DNA of 64,000 nucleotides from Octopus sinensis (GCF_006345805.1 NC_043002.1:117924001-117988000); one strand, 5' to 3'. Counted from the stretch's first letter, positions 872-56,548 are shown. Notes: generated from the sequence alone by a model not told the origin. Numbers and translations are program-made.

Positions 872-2879
872 GTAAGTGTTTCACTCATTTCTAATTTCTA
901 TCACCAATTCATCGGTTTTGGGACAACTGGAAGGAAATATTTTAATTTTTGTAGAATTTTGTTATTTTAATTTGTATTTTTTGTGTAAAAGAAAAAAAGG
1001 GAAAATATTTAATTGGAATTTTCCGATTCTTGATTACAACCAAATCTTTAATATAAATGAGTTGATGGAAATTATTTAATGTTGGTTTTCTAGAATGTAT
1101 TTTAAAAATGGAAATTAGGTTATTTGTCGGCTTTGGTGGTCGATTGGGAACTCGAAGCACCTTTCCTCCTCCGCAAACATCTTCCAAAACCAAAACCAAA
1201 AACTTTCGCCGGCGAATTCTCTCCAACTTTTCCTCTTCTTCCAAACTGGACCCGGAATCTCTCCACAATCCTTGCATCTCCAATCACTTATAAATTCATT
1301 ATCAATTCCACTTCTTCTTCTTCGTGTAAAAAGGATTTTAACAGAAACAAATCGCATTTCACTTGTGACATTCTTTTAAATAAATCCTGCATCTTCTTAA
1401 ATCTTTCTTCTTAAATCTTTCTTCTTAAATCTTTCTTATTAAACACAAACAGACTCAAAACTCCACGTATTTTGCTCCACTTTGAATAACTTTATTTTTC
1501 TCTCCTCAATTGCTATAATTATCAAATTTTAATAATTCTGGTTCTCTTCATGGAATATTTCTCAAACCCATTCGCTTCTAATCTTTTACCTTTCTCTCCA
1601 ATTATTCTCTCTCAAATTAATCAATCTTAATCAATTTATTTCACAAATACCCATTCCCCCCCTCCTTAAATTAAAACTTTGACTTTTTTTCTTTCTATTT
1701 TCTAAATTCTAAAATGATTTTCCCGCTTGATGCAGTTTTTTTGTCTAAAATCCTCCGCTTTCTTCCTTCTTCGCCACAAAAGCCTTCCTTATTTATGAAC
1801 CATTTAAACACTAATTATACAATTTCGTTATGTAATCAGGCTTCATATTATCCCCGAAACTATAAAAACTTCATTTTTCCAGGTTTTTACCATAATTTGT
1901 GTATTTAAAAAAAAAAAAAAACCTTTCCGATGGATTTTGCTTCGTTCTTTTTTCCCTTTCCGTGTTTAATAGTTTTACTTGTTTTTTTTTTTTAATTGTA
2001 TCTTTAACGATTAATCCTGTTTAAAGACGGAAAAGTTAGCAAACATTTACCTAATGTCGCTTAAATAACGAGCTTTTCTCCTTAATTTCCAGCGTGACTC
2101 GCCGCCGCCGCCGGATGACCTAAAAAAGGCCGCGTGCTGCGTTGACCCCATTTTCTGCTGAGTAATGGCGAGATTCTTTTAATATTAACCAAATAAAATA
2201 CGTTTATTTCCATCGTCGTCGCTAGTAAAAGCTTTAAGTTCAAAAATTTGTTCTCTCACCTCCGAGCGAAAAATGAAATCGCAATCGTTGGCAAAATCGG
2301 TGTCATTGAAATTTCGTATAAAGATAGTTTTGCTTTAGAATCCTTTTTGCCATTATGATTAAAAATTACTGGGATTTGTAGATGTTTTGGATCAATCCAC
2401 CAACTTTTAACTAATTATGATGGAGCATTACCGAGATAATTAACTCAAGCAAACCTACCGCTATAAATGTTATTTTCACTTTTTTTCAATTTTTCTATAT
2501 TTATTTACTGTGAAAAATTAAGTCGACAAAATGTATTCTAATTTATTCGACTTTTACACTAATTCGCCGCTAACCATGTGTGGTTCTCCCCTCCCACCTG
2601 AAGTATATGGATCATTTTCTGAGTGTTCTTTGGTTTTCTGTCTAGGCACAACTAAGTTTACCAGTAACTACTATTAAAGTTGGTGTAGGTACCAGGCGCC
2701 ACGTGTGACAGACAACCCTCCTCTCTAAGGCTGCTACTACAGAGTAATCTATCTGCCGAGACTCCTTCCTAGATCAACCGATTTAACGATACTCCAATAA
2801 TAGTGAAGTGTGACTAACGAGATACACACTATCTCCATTCTCTTGATTGAACGAGTATCCTTCAGTCTCCTCCCTACAG

Positions 2880-2918
2880 CCGATATAAACTACAATGGAC
2901 GACGTGGCTACTTCTCGT
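2880..2918 (+). CDS. SRSF4/5/6: Candidate upstream 39-nt exon with in-frame ATG (MDDVATSR) of the SR protein
   Basis: Acceptor ccttcagtctcctccctacag| at 2879; ATG at 2895 in strong context (A at -3, G at +4); donor CGT|GTGAGT at 2919; phase-0 join to 3035. Confidence 0.5.
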
Positions 2919-3034
2919 GTGAGTAATTTTAAGCTGATAAATAGCTGGATTCTTATTATTTTTGGTTTGTTAAGATTTGATTCTCCTTTTAACAAGTTTC
3001 ACCATAAGTAAATCTGTTCATGTTTGCTTTCCAG

Positions 3035-3157
3035 ATGGGAACTCGAGTGTATATTGGTCGTTTGTCTTACCATGCCAGAGAGAAAGATGTGGAGAGGTTT
3101 TTCCGCGGATTCGGTAGAATCAGAGATATCATGCTGAAAAATGGCTATGGATTTGTT
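3035..3157 (+). CDS. SRSF4/5/6: SR protein coding exon (RRM1 N-half)
   Basis: ccag|ATG...GTT|gtaagt; [10 protein letters not shown]...NGYGFV. Confidence 0.96.
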
Positions 3158-6100
3158 GTAAGTGATTTCCCTGAAGTTTTGGTTTTCATTAATTAGTCAT
3201 CGAAAACTCCTTGTAATTTTAGTGTTTCACCGTTACATTAATGTAATGTAAACAATTGCATTCCTTATAACGTTAACCCTTTTTCTTTCCTTTCGAATGA
3301 TTTTTTTTTAATATACATCCCCCCCCTTTTTTTAAAGGAATTTGAAGATTATAGGGATGCTGATGATGCAGTATATGAGTTAAATGGTAAAGAACTATGT
3401 GGCGAGAGGTAAGTCAAGGAAATTATTATAAATTAGTTCAAAGTTTTCTTTGAAATTTCCTATTTTTCTGAAAATATGTATTGTATCCTGTCTCTAGATT
3501 CTTCTTCCAAAGTGCAGGGCAATATTGTGTGAATTTTTTTTTGTCTTAGAGAAGGCTTTTGTGAGAAGAGATTAAATGCTAACAATATAGGTGAAATTTA
3601 GCTCTTAGAAATATTCTGTTCAGTCTAGTTTTTACTCACTTGCTTGGGTTGCAAAATGTTTTAGAAATTCGAATAAGGTATGCCAGTTAAAACTGGATTG
3701 TTGGCAGATAGGCAATTAGAACTTTTGATAGTCTGGAGAAAAAGCAGTGCGTAGCTGCTTGATAGAATTTGTACTGGAAATGGCAAGGATTTTAAGATAA
3801 ATGTATAGAGCTTCTATTGACAGTATTTACCTGTGCAAAGTCCGTGATTATATTTAGTCAAACTTAAGTGATGTTCCTGGAAATGTGGTGCATTAGGAAG
3901 TATGATTTGATGTACAACTCGTTAAAGACTCTTTAAAACGGTTTTCTTTTGAAATGTTTTATAATACATGTTTTCTTAAGTTACTGATCTTTTTATCCAG
4001 AGTAATTGTGGAACATGCTCGTGGGTTACCAAGGAGTGAGGAAAGTTGGCGTGATAGAGATAGGGGTTCACGCTTTCCACCCCGTCGCCGAGGAGGCAGA
4101 GACAAGTGAGGATATCATTTTTTTTATGCTCTTTTTAAACAGCTTAGGTTGAAAAAGTGCTTTTGTGTAGTGGGTGAACAGATACAAGTTTTAAAAAGCT
4201 CAAGTATATTAATTGTAAGAAAATAATGAACTTAAAAATATGGTCTTGTGTAATGTATGCATGACTGCAGATTATAATCACCTTTGTAAATTAAGCTATG
4301 AATTTGTAATTTTTAATGCTTTTAACAGCAGGTTAGTGAAAATGTGCCATTGTTCCCCCTGATCTTGATTGGGCTGCCAAAGGTCAAGGAATAATTTCTG
4401 TGTTTACACAAAGCCATTGTTAGTATCATTCAAATGAATTAGGATGGCAGTCCCTGGGACAGAACATTCAAAATACTTTTGCAGTAGGAGCTTGCCTCTT
4501 TCAGTTTCTGATCATACACGAAATTTCAGATTTGTTGTGTTTCTCAATTCATAGCAGGTATGGGCCTCCCACAAGGACAGAGTTCAGACTTATAGTCGAA
4601 AATTTATCATCTAGAGTCAGTTGGCAGGTATTTATGAATTTGATTTTTTTTTTCTTATCTTATGTATTTCGACAGCGACACTTAATGTATCTGCTGAACT
4701 AGGTTTGGGAATCTGTTTAGTAATTAATTTAATTTAGCAATTACTATCTACTTGTCCCACCTAGTTTGGCAGATTTTGTAGAGAATCTCTTAAAGCTTTA
4801 GTAAATGCTCTTTTATTTTTAAAATTGTAATATTTGTTTTTTCATATTTGTTGTAAATTCATATTGTGTTAATTAGGAAAATGCATGTTTAAAGTTGAAA
4901 CTGCATTGTACTTGATTTTAATTATTTACTTAAAATTTCTTTTATTGAAAAGGAACCACTTTGTGGGTTGGTTTAAAGCTACTAGTGTAATTCTCTTTCC
5001 CTCCCCTCCTCTCTAAAAATGTACCAAAAACTGATCAGAATGGATTTGCAACTTCTATTGAGAACATTTGCCGATTGATTTAACTCGAGTTGTGAATTAT
5101 CTAGCAATGTGATTAAGACGACCAGAAACAAGATTTCTTGTGAAGATGGAAACTCCAGTGTTGACAGCAAATGTCCCAGGAAAGGATGAAAGAAAAATAT
5201 TTTATTTACGTCCCTTTTCTCCTTCGTTCTGGGCATTTTTTTGGGTGTGGAATATGTAGTTGTAATTATGTTTGCCAACTTCCCTAGATTGTTTTGTATC
5301 CTATGTGGGCCCACTATAAATATTGATGCTAAATTGGCACTCTGCTTGATATTTAAAAATTGTATTTGATTTTCAAGCAAGATTTTTCCAATTTGGTTTC
5401 GCTTCTGTGGTGTTTTATCTTTTTAAAATAAGACAATTACACATCACAATAATTTTAATTTAATCTCACTTTAATTGTTTTAGTGTTGATTATATTTATA
5501 GTGGGCCTAATTTTTGTTTATTTTCTACAGAATCCCTAATATTTGATTGACACGAGATTCTTTTATTCCAATGTCTTCATATTATAAAAGACAACTAATT
5601 AATGCAACTAAGGTGACTTATTAAATAAGGTTTAATTACCATTGCTTCAAACTTGGAATGTTGAATCTCTTGTTATTTTTAATATTGTGATGGTTATTAC
5701 ATTATGAAAAAGGGGCTTTTAAAGTGTTTGTTTTGTTCTTGTTTAAACAATCATAATAAAATTTAATATATTGGGACAAAATATCCAATGGACTGACATC
5801 ACTTTACATTTATTTGAATAGTTTTATTCAGCATGAATGTACAGTGATGACGGTTTCCTGTCTTAAATTGTAAAAGTTGCATGTGAGAGTGAATGCTTTA
5901 AATATGTGTGTGTATGGTATACATCTTTTTATCAGATACATTTTGCTTGAGGATGTAATAAAATATTTACATAAAAAGTATAGTCAAAACAAATACTGAA
6001 AGCCCTTTTTATTAGAAATGTGTACTAATTATGTCATCTGACTTGTAACTACTCTTCCTCTCCCCTGAAAGCTTGTACAGATGACAGCCGATGAGACGCT

Positions 6101-8351
6101 TTTGGGTTGAACTGGCCTGTCCTAAATACTGAGTGCGTGAGGGCAGTGGTCTCAAAGCAATCAGATGTATCTGGGGTTGCGCTAAAGTTCTGGCTGGCTG
6201 GAGGTTTTCCCTTTCTAACCAACTGAGGGTGGCCTGCCCTCTTCCTACGTGCTGGCTCCCTTTTGGCTTGGAATAGAACCATCTTACAGAACGTGTTGGC
6301 TCCGCTTATTTTGCACTGGTCCACTCTTCCAATTGGTACTTGTCGTTATTCCACTCTGGCTGAAGTCCCACAATGTGGTTGGTCTTCTGGGAAGTCCACT
6401 CTGAACTGACTGGCTGTGTGGCAGGCGGGTGCCACCGCTTCCTCGGCAGCTGTGCACAGGCAGTGCAAGCTTGTTACCTCTTACCTCTTCTTTACCCATC
6501 CTGGCTGGATGGGCGCACACAAAGCTGCTTCTCCTTTTGGCAATAGGGTTGCTCGCATCCATTAGATGTCACTTGGTCAATCTATCAGGGCTAGTGAATG
6601 ACGTAGAAACATGGCAATGTACAAGGAGAGGTAATTGTAATCCTCCTCATATTTTGTGATCAGTGTTTTTAGTTTAGTTTACTATATAAACTTTATAAAG
6701 CATCTGGCATTAAGTCTTTTCTTTTCTTTTTTTTTTTAATATTTTTATATAATTTAAAGATACTTTAATTTTCAAATTTCACTGTTCATCTTCATATTTA
6801 CATTTTTTTCTAGAGTAATTTAAATTATTTAAAATTTTAATTTTAATGATAAATAACTAGGAAACTTGTTAAAGCAAACTATTTAACATTTGGTGCAGTT
6901 TTCCAAAATCAGATTTGGATCTATATTTTAGAAAGATTGAAGGAACTCAGTGAAATGAGTTTCTCATTAAATCAACCTAAGTTTTGTGGCTGTAGCAGCT
7001 TGAACTTTTACATGCTGTCTTTGCAACACTGAATAATAAACTTCACTGCTGGTCCAGCTCAGCTGGCTGCTCCTGGGGTTTACAGCTCCTGGGGTTTATA
7101 GTGGTTACTGTTCACTAACATATTGTTCCTGTCTGTAACTACCAGCTGAACTTTTACCAGATGCTTTCTTTAAAATGTAGTTTTGTAATCTTTGACCATT
7201 TCTGTTCTAGTAACATTTGTCCGGTAGGTGTCTTGTGTGATATGAGTGCATGTGAGAGTGTTAGATAGAATGGTTATTTTGCTTTTGAAGTTTTAACTAA
7301 AATTTATAATATAGCTTCTGTTCTTTCAAAGGATCTCAAAGACTATATGCGACAGGCTGGTGAAGTGACATATGCTGATGCTCATAAGGACCGTAAAAAT
7401 GAGGGGTAAGTTCATGGCCATTATTTAATTTTTCTGGTTTTCAGTGAATACCATGCTATTAAAAGAAGTATAATTATGTATTATTTAGTTCTATAACACT
7501 TAATTATTTAGTATATATTTTTATATCCTGCTGTTTTAAACTTTAGATTCCTGATAATATATTTAGTATATATTTTTATATCCTGCTGTTTTAAACTTTA
7601 GATTCCTGATAATATATTTTTCTTTTTGTCAGAATTGTAGAGTTTGCCACATATTCAGATATGAAAAATGCCTTAGATAAATTGGATGATACAGAAATTA
7701 ATGGGAGGCACATAAGGTTGATTGAAGACAGACCCCGTAAGCGTAGGCGCAGGTAAGAGGATTTTAAATATGTTTGTGTTACAATGTAAATGTCTTTTTA
7801 ACTGCATAAAAAGTTAATATTTGATAATGATAAAGAATTGTAGACATGTGGTAAAAATCTTAGTAAACAGTTGTGAATAACAAATTGTAACATGTTTAGT
7901 TTAGCCAGTATCAATATTGGGAAGATCCAATTTGTGAAATATGACGTAAATTTTTGTATGACAAGTTCTAAAATTCTATTTTTTCCTCCTCCTCAGCTCT
8001 CGCTCTCATTCACGTAGCCGATCAAGGTCCCGATCTCGGTCCCGCAGAAGGAGCCGGTCTCACTCTCGTTCTCGATCTGGGTCTCATCACAGTCGATCCC
8101 GTTCCGAACAGTCTCGGTCTCGTTCTAGATCAAGAAGTAGGCAGTCTGCAAGCCGCAGTCCAAGTAAAAGCAGGAGCAAGAGTCCTAGCCATTCCAGATC
8201 CAACACGCCACGGTCACGGTCAGTAAGCAAGAGTAAATCTAAGTCACGGTCTCCTTCACCATCCCGTTCTAAGTCTAGAACTCCGGAACCAAAGGAAAAT
8301 GGTTCACCAGTTGAAGAAAATCAAGTCAATGACAAAGATGCTAAAGAATGA
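3035..8351 (+). CDS. SRSF4/5/6: Serine/arginine-rich splicing factor, SRSF4/5/6 (SRp55/B52) family; join(3035..3157,3338..3408,4001..4105,4558..4627,7332..7405,7633..7752,7997..8351), 305 aa
   Basis: All introns GT-AG with consistent phases, total 918 nt. RRM1 [73 protein letters not shown]; RRM2 [42 protein letters not shown]...[30 protein letters not shown]; RS domain in the last exon; TGA at 8349-8351. Confidence 0.97.
3338..3408 (+). CDS. SRSF4/5/6: SR protein coding exon (RRM1 C-half)
   Basis: aaag|GAA...GAG AG|gtaagt; [23 protein letters not shown]. Confidence 0.96.
4001..4105 (+). CDS. SRSF4/5/6: SR protein coding exon (end of RRM1 and linker)
   Basis: ccag|A GTA...GAC AA|gtgag; [34 protein letters not shown]. 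Confidence 0.95.
4558..4627 (+). CDS. SRSF4/5/6: SR protein coding exon (RRM2 start)
   Basis: tagcag|G TAT...TGG CAG|gtattt; [23 protein letters not shown]. Confidence 0.96.
6081..6630 (+). other. Candidate PTC-containing poison exon in SRSF intron 4
   Basis: Branch-like TACTAAT near 6023, pyrimidine tract, AGs at 6071/6080/6087, about 50-55% GC island, donor GAG|GTAATT at 6631, in-frame TGA at 6108-6110. Confidence 0.6.
7332..7405 (+). CDS. SRSF4/5/6: SR protein coding exon (RRM2 middle)
   Basis: aaag|GAT CTC AAA...GAG GG|gtaagt; [24 protein letters not shown]. Confidence 0.96.
7505..7619. repeat. Perfect 55-bp tandem duplication in SRSF intron 5
   Basis: tatttagtatatatttttatatcctgctgttttaaactttagattcctgataata occurs at 7505-7559 and 7560-7614. 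Confidence 0.9.
7633..7752 (+). CDS. SRSF4/5/6: SR protein coding exon (RRM2 end)
   Basis: tcag|A ATT...CGC AG|gtaaga; [39 protein letters not shown]. Confidence 0.96.
7997..8351 (+). CDS. SRSF4/5/6: SR protein last coding exon (RS domain)
   Basis: ctcag|C TCT CGC TCT CAT...; RS dipeptide run ending ...NDKDAKE TGA. Confidence 0.95.
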
Positions 8352-12224: not shown

Positions 12225-13005
12225 CCCATTCATTACCAAACCGCCCGAAAAAAATTTTGGTTAATGTGACCAAGCCGCCCGAATTTACCTATTCATATTT
12301 AAATGAGATTATGCTTTGTAAACAGTTCATCGACAGTTTTGTACTAAGATCGACGTGTAATTTTAATTCCCTGAATTTTGGGAGATTTTTTTCGGCATCG
12401 ATTTTTCTTCAACTTTGAAAATGGATAGGAGTTTCATGTTATAAAGCATTGATTCCGAATTGGAAAATTTGTGAAGCAAATACTGGGTACTGTTGTGGAT
12501 TTAGTTTTTATACAGGGAAAATAATGTTAGTCAGCGTGGTCTGGAATTTATCACTTCCATACCATAACCAGGGCCGTATATCATTTTTCGACCGATTTCT
12601 TTAGTTCAGTGAAACTTACGGTGGATTCCAGTATTTCACTTTATTCCACCTTTATGGTACACCTGTTGTGCATTAAATTCAACTGACGATATAGCGATGT
12701 GCACAATTCTTCTTTATCAAAATTTTGTTGCATATGAATATTAGCTGATGATTCATTTTCTATGGTGATGTTTAAACAAAATTTTTATATTTTTACCTGT
12801 AATTAAAGTCACTTTGAGACAAAAGTTATGCAATAGAATTGATTAAGAACCCTTTCTTTAATTATGTTCCAAATATCACATTAATATGTTGATAAGTAAA
12901 AAAAGTTAGTTATTTAATGAAACAAACCTAGATTCATGATTATTTTAGAATTTAATTGAAACTCATGAGGGGTGTATTTTGGTCAGAAATACAGTAACGA
13001 AAGGG
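12225..13005. mobile_element. Non-autonomous piggyBac-type DNA transposon, 781 bp
   Basis: TTAA|CCCATTCATTAC...GTAACGAAAGGG|TTAA; subterminal direct repeats ACCAA(A/G)CCGCCCGAA at 12235 and 12269; no ORF. Confidence 0.75.
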
Positions 13006-29800: not shown

Positions 29801-32465
29801 GAATGAAGGAAAGCATCATATGTGCAAGAGTGGCTATTGCTCAATGAATTATGACATAATTTATCTATGCAATTTATCATTTTGTAAAAAAAAAAAATCA
29901 AAAATTCATTCCAATATAAACAAGATTATCCCCTTGGATCAGGTTTCAGAAAAAAAGAAAAATAAAGGAAAAGGAAACATTTACATGTTTACCTTATATT
30001 ATACTGAAAGGTTAAAGTAAAACATCTATGACAACTTTTATATTGAGCATCATGACAAAGATAAAAAATATCAAATATATAATTTGATGCACTCTTTATA
30101 GAAAAATCCCATAAAAAAATGTTTTATTGGATTTATGATAACTAAATTTATAAGATACTAAGTAATTAAAATTTATATTAAATAAAGTTTAAGGAATAAA
30201 ACAAATATTATCATTGCAAACATTTAATTTATCTAAATATTTCTGGAGGGGAAGAATTAGATTTTTCTGTTCATACAAGCAGACAGAGTTCTAAACAATC
30301 TCTCTGGAGGAGATTTATTTATAGAAATTCAGTCCCACTTTGATTAGTAGAGTTTAAGGAAGGGCCTATAAATGAGATTGGCGGTTGATATAGAATTTGG
30401 AGAATGGAGATGAGTACATTATAAAACGCATAAGGAAAAAAGAGTGGTAGAACTTAGAACAATCATGTTTAGGATTGGGTTTAAAGAGCCAGCAAGGAAC
30501 AGAGAGAAAGTTTTAGCAAGTAGAAGTATAATACCCATGTAAGTCAGTTATAACAGGAGCAGAGAATATATGGCAATTGGCAGGGAATTTTAGAGAGTTT
30601 ATCAATCAAAAAGATGGATTTTCATTAGCTGTGTATAATGAATAAAGGATGATAGCAGTACATTATATTGGAACAGTTTTATAACTTGTAGAGCCAGGAG
30701 ATAATGTAATTCTTTACTTCAAAAGTTTCTGTTAAAAAGGCTAAAGCTATATTAAAAATATAAAGGCTTTTCAGTGTGTTACATTACCTACACTGAAACA
30801 CAATTCTTCCCAATAGAAGCCTAAAACAATATTCTACAAAGGTGACAAAATAACCTAATCACAACCAATAGTGACAAAACACATGCATTATATATTTTAT
30901 TGTAAAGAAGCTGCAAATGGTGTATTATTTTATTCATAGAAAATACACAGCTCAAAGCAAGACACTCACTGCAATTTATAAGTAACCTTTCATGGTGACC
31001 AAATTTCATCAAGGCCCATGATACTTTTGTTACTCAAGTGGATACATGTAGATCTGATGTCTCTTATGTATATGTTTGAAGATGGTGAGACAGCTCGAGT
31101 AAACAATGATAAGAGAGAGAGAGGGGTGAAGTGTTGGAAAGTGGTCCAGATAAGTCCTATGATGTCCCTAGTTACCCTGGAAGCAATGTATGGAACATTA
31201 AAACAAATTTCATTTATACTTACTGTTCCAGCACCTTCTGCCAATGCATTATTAACTTTTACTCTTTTCTTCTTTTTGTCAACATTGTTTTCACGTCTTT
31301 TTTTCTGAAGAGTCAGCAGTAGAGAGATGAACTGATTCTTGAGTTCCTTGTCATATTCAAGCTCATCACGTAAGGCTAGTTCAGTGACTAGAGTTTCTGA
31401 TAGCTCTTTTATGGTCAGCTCAAATTGGGCAAGTAACTCATTCAGAGCTGCCGTTGACATGCTTTTCATCTCTGAAAATATACAAGAATATTTTTCTTTT
31501 GGTCACATGAATTCATATTTAATTTATTGTTTTATATAATTTTCTTCTTTTTGTATATTATTTAAGATTCTCTATTTCTGACAAAGCAATTATATAATAA
31601 CTATTTTTTAATCTTTTACCTTTTACTTGTACTGTGGCAATGCTGGGGCACCACCTTAAAGAATTTTTTAGTCAAATAATTCAACCCCAGTATTTATTGT
31701 TTTTTAAAGCCTAGTACTTATTCTATTGGTTTCTTTTGCTGAACTCTTAAGTTACAGGAATGTAAACACATCAACACCAGTTGTAAAGTGGTGTTGGAGA
31801 ACAAACACAAATACAAAGGCATACACAACAAGCTTCCTTCAGTTTCCATTCACCAAATCCACTCACAAAGCTTTGATTGGCCTAAGGCTAAACACAAAGT
31901 TTTATAATCATCTAAGCAAATATCATCTTATAACTTTGTTTTTCAACATAAACACAGGTGCAATTTTTGATAGTTTGTTACAATGTTAATATTTTCCATC
32001 TAAATCGAGTTAATATTAATTTTTTTGCTTGATACTAAAACTCAGGGATACAACAACTATTTAAAATTTATGAGTATTGTATATTATTCATGCAAAATTA
32101 ATAAAACTACTACCTCCAGAGAAAACTTGAAGTGAATGTATACAAAAAATTAATACTATAGTCTACAATTCCCTAATACAATTGTCTCAAACATTAAAAC
32201 TCCAAGTTCAAAGTCTTAATTTTCAGGATTTCGGGCTCAATACATAGAAAGATATAATTAAAAAAACCTTCAAAAAATTTAACCAAACTCAACATATGTA
32301 ATCTAAAAGTTTGGTAAAGTTTCAGTAGCCTGGACAGAATAATTACAAAGTTGTTAAACTTTAACACCTTCAGTTATTAAATGAGTATCATCTCTACATT
32401 ATAATAAGCTGATATAAATGTTAGTTGATTGCTTGATTTCTCCAGTCACATTTTACATTGTACAA

Positions 32466-35158: not shown

Positions 35159-38100
35159 AAAAAAGCAACAAGAATGGATTAAAATCTTGGTACAATTGTT
35201 TCGTACGAGGACATCTTTAATAAGCTACAAAAAATGCAGTAAATATAGATGGCTCGTTCTCGTCAGCCGAAAAAACATCAGAGATTCCCAAACATGAAAA
35301 GGGGTGGATACAAATGAGGGTGTAAGTTTAACTGCATTGAAGAAAGTTCGATTCCTGGAGATCCGATGAAAGGTCTTGAACTTACAGAATTTGTGCATGT
35401 CCATATATAGCTCATAGTGAATTGTTAATCAAGTTATGTGAAGAAATTTTGGATACAGTCATGCGAAATTTCTGAGAATCCGAGTAAGAAGCAAAGTGAC
35501 TGTCATATCGTGTAGAGGAACAGATTGTTATTGAAATTTACAAGAATCACAGATAAGTTTGATTCCTGGAGATCCGATGAAAAGTCTTGAACTTACAGAA
35601 TATGTGCATGTCCATATAGTGCATAGTGAATTATTAATCAAGTTATGTGAAGAAATTTTGGGTACAATCGTGCGAAATTTCAGGGAATCCGAGTGAGAAG
35701 CAAAATGACAATCTTATTCTGTAGAGGAACAGATTGTTATTGAAATTTACAAGAATCACAGAGAGAAGAGGAAGGAAGTAGAATTTAGTCAGTTACTGCT
35801 ATTAAATGCTATCAAAGAGAAGGGAACGGGAAGCTAAGGGGAGGGACACAAGTTGATACTATAAGAAAAATCTAAGCTTATTTGGTGCAAAATTCGAACT
35901 GAGGTCAATTAATTTATTTCTTTATTTATTAGTGTTACTATTAATAGATTGTCAGGTTACAATGAGAGGTCAGTAGAAAGGAAAGAACAAAAGGAGTTGT
36001 TTTCTAATGAAACCAAACAATTATATTATTATATTATATTATATTATATTATATTATAATATATTACAATAGGTTTGGGATTAGCAGAATTAATTATTAG
36101 TGCAAAAGAAACTAAGAAGTTTAACTAACTAATTTTTTATAGGTAGGTTAAAGTGAAATAGACTAAGAAATAGAGATAAAAATAGAGCAAAATTAAAATT
36201 ATCTACATAGTCTAATAGAAATAAATCAAATAACTTAAATCAATAAGTATTAAATAGTACAGTTAGAGAGAGACTATAATCATAGCTAGTTAGATCGTAT
36301 CTGTCTAGTTAAATATATAATATACTATGTGATTTTATAAAGTGATTTTATACTAAGTGATTTTAATATACAGTTGTCAATTAAAATATCATTTAAAATA
36401 TTTAAGAGTCTTAGTTCGAGCGTGTATACAAGAATTTTCCTAGTTCAATTCTGCTGTTCAGTGAAATTTCCCTATTTTTTCTATACATTAGTATTTCAAA
36501 TGTTTCCATGGAGCAAAGTTGACAACCTACCCTGCTATTTTTATAGGGTATTGCTCTTCTGACTAATTCCCAATTAAGGTTATATTTGATATTATTGTTT
36601 TTTAGTTCCCAAATTTTACTAGAAAGAGTGGTGCTATCAGCTTTATGACGTAATCTGAAGGAGGATAGATGATTATTCAATCTTTTCTTAAAATTTACAG
36701 TACATCCAACATAAGTGAATTTATTATTATCTGTGGTTGTGGAGCATTTGTAGATTATGTTATTTAACCCGCATAAACCAGGTGCCGGGTATTTTGATTT
36801 AATTCTGCAGTTACATCTAGGGGAATTATAATTAGAAGTGGAATAACTTGAGGATAGAAGTCTCATCCTACTGTTGCTCGAAGCAGTGCGGGTAAATTTA
36901 TCATGATTTTGGTTATTGTTGTTATCTAAAAAAACTCTATCATTATTGTAGTTAATATTATTATCTAAAGTAGTATTATCATTTATTGGTATTCTTACAT
37001 TTTCATTTGGTTCTAAAGCCCTACTTTCATTATTAATATTATTGGTGCTGTTATCTAAAATAATGTTATCATTATTGTAGTTAATGTTATTACCTAAAGT
37101 AGTATTATTATTTATCGGTATTCCTACACTATCATTTGGTTCTATAACCCTACTATCATTATTGATATTGTTGGTGTGCTGTTAGTATTGTTGTCGGTAT
37201 TGTTTTCCAAATGTGTAGTGTTGTTGCTGATAACATTGTTGTCCTCATTCACTGTACTTACATTCCTGGTATTATTCCTATTATTAACATAATCATTCCT
37301 ATTTATGTTATTATTATTATTAACAATTCTATAGCTATTGGTTATATTTATTATATGACATTCCTTATTATCATTGTTGCAATTATTACTTTCAGTAATG
37401 TTATTACAATTTTCAATTGTATTTTTATTCTTATTGTTTAAATTTTTTCTGGCTAGTTTTATGTTATTATTATTGATCTTAGCTATTAAAGTGGACATAT
37501 TTGGGAGGGTTGAATAAGAAATTCTGACTGTTTTTTTAGAAATAATTTTATGATATCTATGAGAGGATGGGAAATTTTTTTCAAGAATTGTTTTGAATCT
37601 ACTCTGAATATCTGATGAAACCGCACAGTTAAAAGGGATGTTTAGCCATATTATGTCTTTCTTATTAAATTTCTTAGAATTAGAGTTAGGGCTGTTAGAA
37701 TTGTTCCCACTAGAGTTAGGGTTGTTAGAATTGTTCCTATCATCATCAGATTTTTCGTATTTATTAATGTTCTTGTTTGCATGTTTATTAGTTTTATCCA
37801 AGTTTATTTTCTCCTTATTACAAGTGTTCACTGTTATGTTTTTTATTAATGTTCTTAATATCATTAGGGTACTTTGCCGTTGTAATCTATTCTACTATCA
37901 TTTCTGGCTTGGTCATTATTGTTGTCTACGTTACTAATTGTATGTTTCTAATTTTATTTAAGGTTGTCTTATCAGGGCTATCTATGTTATGGTCTATGTA
38001 TTTATCCTTGTACTTATTATCATTACGAATAGATGTTGTATTAGATCCACATCTACGTATCTTTTCGGCTTGATCGTTTTTGTTGTTTATGTGGTTATTG

Positions 38101-39154
38101 CTATTTAAATTACTTAAATTATTATGAGTTTGTAAGTTTTCCGTATCAACAAATGTAATTTTTTGGTTATATCCTGCTCTAGATAACGCCTCATTGTAAT
38201 GTCCTGAGTGTGAGTTAAATGTATCAAAATTAGACGATAATTTGGATATTCTCATGGAAATATTTCTAACTAAGGAATTAATTATATTTGGGGGATGATT
38301 AGATAATTTACTTACGTAACTAGTGATTTCACCTTCTTTTCTAAATGGATAATGTAGTTTGGAGTTAAGGTCTAAAGTAATATCTAGAAAATTAGCTATT
38401 TTAATGCCTGGTTCATAGGTTATGCTAAGGTTGAAATCTTTAAAAAACCTATCAATTTTCTTTTTTATTCTTTCTATGTGTGATTTATTACTGGTATGGA
38501 CAACAAACAAAGAATCATCTCTATATAAACCAGCTTGCAATTCAGGGATCTCCTTTTTTATGCATTTCAGTAGATATGCTCCGACTAAGTTGGTCACCTC
38601 AGCCGAATCACTTGAGCCCATAGGAATATCAAAATTATTAGGGGTATCAGCTCTGGTCCATAATTTTCCCTCAAACTCAATAAATGTTTTTCTAGCTAAA
38701 AGTATAATGTCTATTTCCTCTCTAGATATGAGGGAGCGATTCATCGCGAATATAAGTGATTTATTTAATAGGATAGGGGAAATGCTAGAGTAGTAGTTAT
38801 TTATGTCGAATTGAATGAAGGCTAGATTATTGGAAATCGAACTTTCTTCAATGCAGTTAAACTTACACCCTCATTTGTATCCACCCCTTTTCATGTTTGG
38901 GAATCTCTAATGTTTTTTCGGCTGACGAGAACGAGCTATCTATATTTACTGCATTTTTTGTAGCTTATTAAAGATGTCCTCGTACGAAACAATTGGACCG
39001 AGATTTTTAATCTCATTCTTGTTGCTTTTTTTCCTATTTGTAATCACCCCACTGTTCGTATGGTTAAACCATATAGATTTCCGGGCATCATCCTAGTTCA
39101 CGACCATATTCATGTGAATTCATTAAATTCACTTGAATCTCAATTACTTAAACC

Positions 39155-55316: not shown

Positions 55317-56548
55317 TGAGGGTTAGCTGAAAAGTTCAAGGGGTAACCAAGATAATCTCATGAAATGTGATCAAATGAGGTTTATTTTTCAACACAGTTC
55401 TTCTTGCGGTCCACACACTTCTTCCAGTGGTATTGCAGTGTTTGGATTCCATTGGTGAAGAAGCTTTTGTACTGTTGGTCAAAAAAAGTCACTAACAGCA
55501 GATATGATGCCATTACTACTGTGACACTGGTTCCTAGCTAAGTGTTTTTTAATGTTGGGGAACAGATGATAGTCAGAAGGGACCAAATCAGGAGAATAAG
55601 GAGGGTGATCAACCAGTCCAATTCCACAGTCATGCACAGTAGCCACTGAAACCAACACTTGTGTGCTGGAGCATTGTCCATGATGAAACAAGACACCTTT
55701 CATCAGTTTTCTTGGGCGTTTGGTCTTAATAACTTTTTGTAACTGCTTCAGCAAGTTGATATCGTATTCTCTCTTGATGGTGTGGCCCTTTTGAAGACAG
55801 TCAATACACACAATGCTTTTTTCATCCCCCAAAACGGAGACCATTACCTTTTTTTGCAGATGAAATGACACTGGCCTTCTTTGAGGAGTGTTTCCACTGC
55901 ATAGATTGTCTTTTCTCTGGCTCAAAGTGACGAACCCAACACTAATCCTGCATTATAAGACATTCAAGGAAACCAGCTGGATCTGCCTCAAACAATGTCA
56001 GATTTTCCTGTGATGTGATCAGCCTGCTGTGCTTTTGATTAGGTGTCAGAAGACATGGCACTCATTGAGCAGAATCCCTTGTCATTCTAAGCTCATGGGA
56101 TATTCTAATAGCATTGGCTATTTGATTTATAGTCAACTGCCTGTCATCCATCACCATGTAGTGAACACAATCAGTGTTTTTCTCAGTGGTGGCAGTTGCA
56201 GGATGTCCAGATCTGGGGTCATCTTGAAGATTCTCACTTCCCTTTCTAAATTCAGTGGCCCATGTTTGCACTATTGACAAAACTGGAGCATCATCTCCTA
56301 ATGTAGCAACCATAAATGTCATTGGAGGTTAAACCCTTTTTCTGCAGGTACACAACATGATGTTAAATTTTGTCCATTTTCAAGAGAAGTAGCTACCAGT
56401 TACTTTTGAAGTCTTCTTTGAACAGTCAGATGTCAGTTTACCTAGAAAGAAAGGCAGCAGTTGATTATAAGAAGAGCTGAAATTAATGCACAGCTCTAAG
56501 CAATACTCCTTCACAATCAGCCTATGAACATTTCAGTCCACCATTTAT
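55317..56548 (-). mobile_element. Near full-length degenerate mariner (irritans/Himar-like)
   Basis: HTH TLGDDAP...WATEFRKG...DDPRSGHP; catalytic KVMVSVLGD...HPPYSPDLVPSDYHLFPNIKK; TA + tgagggttagctgaaaagttca matching tgaacatttcagtccacc at the other end. Confidence 0.88.

Follow-up and report, generated by a model that had tools for sequence, protein, structure and literature searches.

The window analysed here is a 64,000-nucleotide (nt) stretch of the Octopus sinensis genome (GCF_006345805.1 NC_043002.1:117924001-117988000) that carries an SR-protein gene on its plus strand, and our subject is a GC-rich block in the longest intron of this gene, a candidate poison exon, that is, a cassette exon with a premature stop. 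The coding exons were rebuilt from reading frames and splice signals (Table 1), and in the spliced product RRM1 is followed by a Gly/Arg linker, a pseudo-RRM bearing the signature SWQDLKD, and a long RS tail. Its best protein matches are SRSF4/5/6 of molluscs, arthropods, and vertebrates, and the exon breaks in the protein (GFV/EFED, GER/V, SWQ/DLKD, and NEG/IVEF; a slash within residues or bases marks an exon boundary) follow an SRSF5-like pattern. Judged from its sequence, the host is an SRSF5/B52-type SR gene of the SRSF4/5/6 subfamily with an SRSF5-like exon/intron pattern, and it is taken to be the single SRSF5/B52-type splicing-factor gene of this species.

The introns measure, in order, 180, 592, 449, 2704, 227, and 244 nt, and by far the longest is the SWQ/DLKD intron (coding intron 4), which agrees with the first-pass annotation, made from the sequence alone, that this intron is much longer than the others (2704 nt versus 180-592 nt). 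The donor of exon 4, CAG/GTATTT, is the weakest donor of the gene when scored with a splice-site matrix, and both it and the acceptor of exon 5 score near the bottom of all splice sites in the gene, as would be expected around a regulated splicing event. The acceptor of exon 4 is a tandem NAGNAG (catAGcAG/gt at 4552-4557), in which the proximal AG leads to ...GRDNRYGPP and the distal AG leads to ...GRDKYGPP; the Acanthosepion pharaonis protein model CAE1322964.1, described below, has the K form of exon 4, corresponding to the distal AG and a start at 4558.

Within the SWQ/DLKD intron, the GC content of the block (6072-6630) is 51% while that of the remainder is 29%, and in 200-nt windows it is 46-54% over 6001-6600 and 19-33% on either flank, in line with the earlier description of a GC-rich block between AT-rich flanks. 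The branch-point-like TACTAAT and CTGAC motifs, the pyrimidine tract, the three AGs, and the GAG/GTAATT donor in that description are all present at the positions given for them (Table 1). A generic splice-site matrix was used for scoring, with the base composition of the intron itself as background. The sole AG that outscores the acceptor at 6071 sits within the GC block, and its score is inflated by the C content. The acceptor at 6071 and the donor at 6631 fall exactly at the boundaries in GC composition, and the splice signals of the block score equal to or above those of the flanking constitutive exons. When the sequence is read in phase 0 from SWQ, starts at 6072 and 6081 reach a TGA at 6108-6110 and a start at 6088 reaches a TGA at 6130-6132; each acceptor choice (6071, 6080, or 6087) therefore gives an early stop, as had been claimed. 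Inclusion would put the stop ahead of the later exon junctions, and the 559-nt insert would also shift the frame. In-frame stops within 559 nt of non-coding DNA are expected by chance and are no evidence on their own.

Downstream of the block, the same intron has a smaller second GC rise (6990-7230) that contains the highest-scoring donor of the intron, CCG/GTAGGT at 7223/7224. Combined with an acceptor at 7145, this donor would give a hypothetical 78-nt cassette (7146-7223, 26 residues) that is in frame and free of stops. Also located here are a short direct duplication, GCTCCTGGGGTTTA(C/T)AG, at 7040-7100 and an extra copy of CTGGCTG, a motif treated below, at 7066-7072.

The 5' junction of the candidate exon is found in a protein model of another cephalopod. 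When the N-terminal half of the window protein was used as a query (136 amino acids; the proteins listed are all ≤238 amino acids, which points to a length filter in candidate selection), the best match was 'SFRS4_5_6 [Acanthosepion pharaonis]' (CAE1322964.1, UniProt A0A812EIC7), whose exons 1-4 are identical to those of the window. This model joins ...SSRVSWQ straight to 10 residues translated from 6072, which is the predicted junction of 4627 to 6072. After SWQ, it runs for 47 residues, and the later residues match 6101-6214 in another frame (35/38 identical in tblastn against the window), so that the 5' 143 nt of the block are matched by the model in two different frames. For the frame to switch, the T-run at ~6098-6101 must be longer by one T and 3 nt must be deleted, and in total two indels and two substitutions, as deduced from the translated model, separate the block from A. 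pharaonis within these 143 nt. Because the frame is not kept and the stop lies elsewhere in A. pharaonis, the block behaves as a non-coding exon would. Thus the acceptor is kept in A. pharaonis and the block sequence is, as read from the translated model, free of coding constraint. Neither the N-terminal-half search nor the full-length protein search returned a cephalopod orthologue other than this truncated model.

The search with the N-terminal half also returned short proteins from other animals, the sequences of which were compared directly. In at least 10 animal lineages, annotated truncated isoforms agree with the window protein as far as ...SWQ, after which a handful of unrelated residues precede a stop. 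SRSF5 isoforms of this kind come from a manta ray, a shark, and two teleosts, and B52 isoforms from Anopheles and Drosophila; the others belong to orthologues in amphioxus, spiders, two nematodes, a sponge, a slug, an annelid, and further assemblies. Since the isoforms from so many lineages all break right after SWQ, the SWQ/DLKD intron is, on this comparison, the ancestral poison-exon intron. We take 'intron 5' of human SRSF5 to be this same intron, based on the truncated isoforms and on the structure of the human gene. A prior study placed the SRSF5-type unproductive-splicing event in SRSF5 intron 5 and termed it 'essentially universal across the metazoa', with molluscs and lophotrochozoans lying outside its species sample (Lareau and Brenner 2015, PMC4379411). 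The first-pass annotation had placed this event in the intron that splits RRM2, and this placement is confirmed by the intron number in that study together with the isoforms that all diverge after SWQ.

Some of the truncated tails start with V, as expected for read-through into the GT of the donor and hence for intron retention, while the majority begin with other residues, a sign of a spliced cassette. Two invertebrate transcripts from Logan, 71% and 75% identical to the query, show this event too: SRR27896754 continues from SWQ to LTQP and a stop and then runs through >580 nt of non-coding sequence without reaching DLKD, and SRR29905058 has all introns spliced out except the 1442-nt SWQ/DLKD intron. 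The latter transcript, the tails that start with V, and the weak flanking splice sites would fit a regulated retention or detention of the entire 2.7-kb intron, similar to that in fungi, with the GC block serving only as an intronic platform that slows splicing. We consider this improbable, since the SWQ/LVQ of CAE1322964.1 corresponds to a splice into the block, where read-through would give SWQVFMNL, and since an acceptor and a donor of high rank belong to the block itself. The SRR27896754 transcript, together with the A. pharaonis model that stops within the block, could also be explained by an alternative terminal exon, in which the block is spliced to exon 4 and followed by cleavage and polyadenylation, yielding a stable short mRNA and a truncated RRM1-only protein without nonsense-mediated decay. 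This arrangement also seems quite unlikely to us, because the block terminates exactly at a good donor and because there is no AATAAA or ATTAAA in the block or in the 330 nt after it; the first ones appear at 6966 and 7035, which weighs against a terminal exon without being decisive.

In the block, we also noticed a repeated motif. CTGGCTG occurs five times where 0.26 copies are expected, a count reached in 0/1000 dinucleotide shuffles, and there are six copies of CTGGCT and eight of TGGCT, with none of the reverse complement AGCCA. Motifs of this type are not enriched in the remainder of the SWQ/DLKD intron. The strand asymmetry of the array points to a function in the sense RNA. The SR motifs TCACAGG, ACDGS, TGCGTC, and USCGKM from systematic evolution of ligands by exponential enrichment, and GAR repeats (a list that includes the SRSF5 and SRSF6 motifs), are not enriched in the block. 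The sense-strand CUGGCUG array is the best candidate for a protein-binding platform that would set the inclusion of the exon.

We compared the orthologous loci of four other molluscs, Gigantopelta aegis (a gastropod), Saccostrea echinata (an oyster), Dreissena polymorpha, and Potamilus streckersoni (a unionid mussel). In all four, SWQ/DLKD is split by an intron of 1.3-11 kb that contains a GC-richer block, and in Gigantopelta, Saccostrea, and Dreissena these blocks, ~250-530 nt in length, end with AAG or GAG followed by the donor GTAA. The exact 10-mer CTGGCTGGCT is found once each in the 64-kb window (6190), the 18-kb Gigantopelta locus (6366), and the 32-kb Potamilus locus (13019), against a chance expectation of ~0.03-0.06 per locus. 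Both strands were searched, and all three copies are on the sense strand and in the GC-richer block of the SWQ/DLKD intron. In the SWQ/DLKD intron of Dreissena, there are two sites with one mismatch to CTGGCTGGCT (three overlapping matches), also on the sense strand, one of which, GGCTGGCTGGAT, resembles CCTGGCTGGATGG at 6500 in the window; the Dreissena sites lie in the second GC peak, and none lies in the highest-GC 500-nt window. The oyster block carries only a degenerate motif, TCTGGCCAGGTTTTTCC, in comparison with GCTGGCTGGAGGTTTTCC in the window. The recurrence of CTGGCTGGCT is suggestive of a short conserved element. A bolder proposal is that the sense-only CUGGCUGG(CU) array is a cis-acting code regulating the ancestral poison exon of SRSF5, that cephalopods, gastropods, and bivalves have kept it for >500 million years as the rest of the exon turned over, and that it binds the SR protein itself or a conserved cross-regulator. 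We regard this as speculative and rather unlikely; if true, the array would be the first defined sequence determinant of the animal-wide SRSF5 feedback loop. In the Dreissena locus, a tRNA-like sequence, GCTGGCTAGCTCAGTTGGTAGAGC, was also observed at 12500-12560, downstream of the DLKD exon, and is probably a tRNA gene or a tRNA-derived short interspersed element (SINE).

Several other identities of the block were considered and rejected. There is no second copy of the block within the 64-kb window, as expected from the statement of the first-pass annotation that it is unlike the local repeat families. An Rfam scan of the whole window found no family, a search for a tRNA or SINE head over 4000-8000 found none, and the six-frame translations of the block gave nothing at E≤0.001 against a set of 5.8 billion proteins. 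A match to a transposon, which that annotation had named as evidence against its proposal, is seen neither as a second copy in the window, nor as a tRNA/SINE head, nor as a protein match. The longest open reading frame (ORF) of the block on either strand encodes 92 amino acids on the minus strand, and an exhaustive HMMER scan of it against 1.84 billion representatives gave only two spurious matches to repetitive proteins. With no matches in any of these searches, an Rfam family, a tRNA/SINE, and a coding remnant were discarded as identities of the block. A structured RNA is unlikely, since shuffled sequences fold at least as stably as the sense RNA does (z = +1.6), and a CpG island was discarded because the observed/expected CpG ratio in the block is 0.38. 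Ultraconserved elements, in the sense of Bejerano et al. in 2004, are reportedly at least 200 nt long and 100% identical between distant species. The block does not have such perfect identity to A. pharaonis over the comparable 143 nt, given the indels and substitutions described above, and the ultraconservation that the first-pass annotation proposed as a check is not established.

A number of observations weigh against the block being a poison exon. The A. pharaonis model ends within the block, so that the donor at 6630 is beyond its reach, and an ab initio predictor lacking transcript evidence could have arrived at the model from the strength of the acceptor and the open, GC-rich stretch. 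The identity to A. pharaonis, ~97% over 143 nt, may reflect the apparent close kinship of the two and carries little weight without an intronic baseline. Nucleotide alignments of the block with Gigantopelta, Saccostrea, Dreissena, SRR27896754, and SRR29905058 show nothing significant beyond short motifs, and the exact CTGGCTGGCT motif is not in the Saccostrea block. Moreover, the Gigantopelta copy of the motif was first spotted by eye, and Potamilus and Dreissena were examined afterwards. Exact look-up of three ORFs of the window returned no record, and no metagenome contig matched in a 20-mer scan. Finally, cassette exons are usually shorter than 559 nt. The >580-nt non-coding tail of SRR27896754 implies that a cassette of several hundred nt is not unusual in an SRSF5-type gene.

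If CAE1322964.1 lacks a transcript basis and is an ab initio artefact, the block might not be a splicing element at all, but a DNA-level regulator, an unclassified non-coding RNA, a degraded transposon with splice-like signals, or a product of chance, and the lack of significant pairwise alignments to other molluscs would be compatible with this. We think it very improbable, as the motif array is strand-specific (8 TGGCT versus 0 AGCCA), the block is unique in the window and matches no Rfam family, tRNA, or protein, its intron is the only one in which the event is known across animals, and the 10-mer CTGGCTGGCT recurs in the SWQ/DLKD intron of two other mollusc classes.

From the splice signals at the GC boundaries, the ancestral intron, the A. 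pharaonis junction, the failure of the alternatives, and the motif array, we conclude that the block at 6072-6630 is probably an alternative poison cassette exon of the SRSF5/B52-type SR gene. The proposal of the first-pass annotation that the block is an SRSF5-type poison cassette is thus supported by the host gene, the position of the intron, and the 5' junction in A. pharaonis. In the productive mRNA, exon 4 (...SWQ) would be joined straight to exon 5 (DLKD...), completing RRM2. Alternatively, the cassette would be recognized through its branch point, the pyrimidine tract, the AG at 6071, and the GAG/GTAATT donor at 6630, adding 559 nt to the mRNA, which would introduce the TGA 12 codons past SWQ and shift the downstream frame. 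With the stop far upstream of three junctions and followed by a very long 3' untranslated region, the mRNA would be expected to undergo nonsense-mediated decay, and at most a 135/136-amino-acid fragment consisting of RRM1 and half of RRM2 would be made. By analogy with human SRSF5, Drosophila B52, Neurospora srp2, and the autoregulation of SRSF3 and SRSF4 cited in the prior study (PMC4379411), inclusion is expected to rise with SR-protein activity, which would provide negative feedback on the output of the gene. The CUGGCUG array within the exon could act as the protein-binding platform that sets inclusion. What the analysis shows is the anatomy of the sequence, the stop, the placement in the ancestral intron, and the 5' junction in the A. 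pharaonis model; we infer the 3' junction, inclusion in the window species, the decay, the feedback, and the factor that binds the motif.

Table 1. Features of the SR gene and the candidate exon in the 64-kb window, and the corresponding intron blocks in other mollusc loci (positions in those loci)
Feature	Position	Strand	Remarks
Coding exons	3035-3157, 3338-3408, 4001-4105, 4555 or 4558-4627, 7332-7405, 7633-7752, 7997-8351	+	
Constitutive coding exon 4	4555 or 4558-4627	+	ends ...SSRVSWQ; NAGNAG acceptor 4554/4555 or 4557/4558; donor CAG/GTATTT
SWQ/DLKD intron	4628-7331	+	2704 nt; presumed counterpart of human SRSF5 intron 5; houses candidate poison exon
Branch-point-like TACTAAT	6023-6029	+	43 nt upstream of first AG; putative function, from sequence
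Second branch-point candidate CTGAC	6038-6042	+	
Polypyrimidine tract CTCTTCCTCTCCCCT	6052-6066	+	
Main 3' splice site AG	6070-6071	+	rank 2/120 among intron AGs; same junction in A. pharaonis model
Alternative AGs	6079-80, 6086-87	+	rank 16 and rank 81, respectively
Candidate poison cassette exon	6072-6630	+	559 nt, not a multiple of 3; 51% GC; without long ORF
First in-frame premature stop TGA	6108-6110	+	12 codons into exon; 520 nt upstream of exon donor; 3 junctions downstream
Motif-array core CTGGCTGGCTGG	6190-6201	+	sense-only array
Further YTGGCTS copies	starts 6252, 6296, 6356, 6410, 6501	+	
5' splice site GTAATT after GAG	6631-6636	+	3' edge of GC block; rank 5/166 among intron GTs; predicted use
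Constitutive coding exon 5	7332-7405	+	begins DLKDYMRQ; weak acceptor
Gigantopelta block	~6082-6608		ccctgacag/cgta to gtgaag/gtaaat
Saccostrea block	~2586-2994		cctcgcag/CCTCATTAG to gtggag/gtaatt
Dreissena block			ends gcgtaag/gtaata
Potamilus block	~400-750 nt into intron		

Elsewhere in the window, the intron that follows the SWQ/DLKD intron contains a 55-nt unit repeated 2.2 times with 98% identity (7501-7619), and a (GT)n microsatellite (674-751) and a 14-nt tandem repeat (1392-1443) are also present. An ORF at 30990-31469 on the minus strand matches Pfam FEZ (E = 1e-24), suggesting an exon of a FEZ/UNC-76-type neighbour gene. Adjacent ORFs at 36411-38744 on the minus strand show a weak reverse-transcriptase match (under the Pfam cut-off) and a GIY-YIG nuclease match and resemble the remnant of a Penelope-like retroelement, and a mariner/Tc1-type transposase fragment lies at 55479-55925 on the minus strand (Pfam Transposase_1, E = 5e-9). 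A local repeat family at 27.6-28.2, 40.3-41.3, and 44.7-45.2 kb has ORFs with common strings such as FYVPPA; the 40.7-41.0 kb portion is a ~158-nt periodic array bearing CTGGCTGGTT and is unrelated to the intron block.

If the block is, as seems probable, a cephalopod poison exon of the SRSF5 type, it is an expected new instance of a known mechanism, and the known picture of SR-gene autoregulation stays unchanged. Only one element goes further than the textbook picture, namely the strand-specific CUGGCUGG array, which reappears in two further classes of molluscs; if it is real, the array would provide a testable handle on how the inclusion of an ancient exon is controlled. We found no paper describing poison exons in cephalopods or molluscs in the literature searched, and the instance therefore appears to be unreported. 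It would extend SRSF5-type unproductive splicing to cephalopods and molluscs, in a superphylum outside the sample of the founding paper, and would explain the truncated 'SFRS4_5_6' model of A. pharaonis as a poison-exon isoform and not a real short protein.

Among known systems, the closest is the poison cassette exon in intron 5 of SRSF5 (SRp40), reportedly described by Lareau et al. in 2007. The window gene shares with SRSF5 and its orthologues (B52, C. elegans rsp, sea urchin, lancelet, and anemone; PMC4379411) the family, the exon pattern, and the intron that splits RRM2 at SWQ/DLKD, and here too the host intron is the longest of the gene. Weak sites flank the candidate cassette in the window, and intron retention co-occurs in the relatives; the nucleotide likeness of the window block to the non-cephalopod exons is limited to a 10-mer. 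The ultraconserved poison exons of mammalian SRSF3, SRSF6, SRSF7, and TRA2B work on the same principle, in that a cassette with a stop, expected to be under non-coding constraint, lies within the gene of a splicing factor, but they are located in different introns and have independent origins (PMC4379411). The retained intron of fungal srp2 (Neurospora and Aspergillus; PMC4379411) is at the orthologous position and, like the window intron, is unusually long and stop-bearing. In contrast to the fungal intron, which is retained as a whole and has no cassette, the window intron contains a separate, exon-like block bounded by splice sites of its own.

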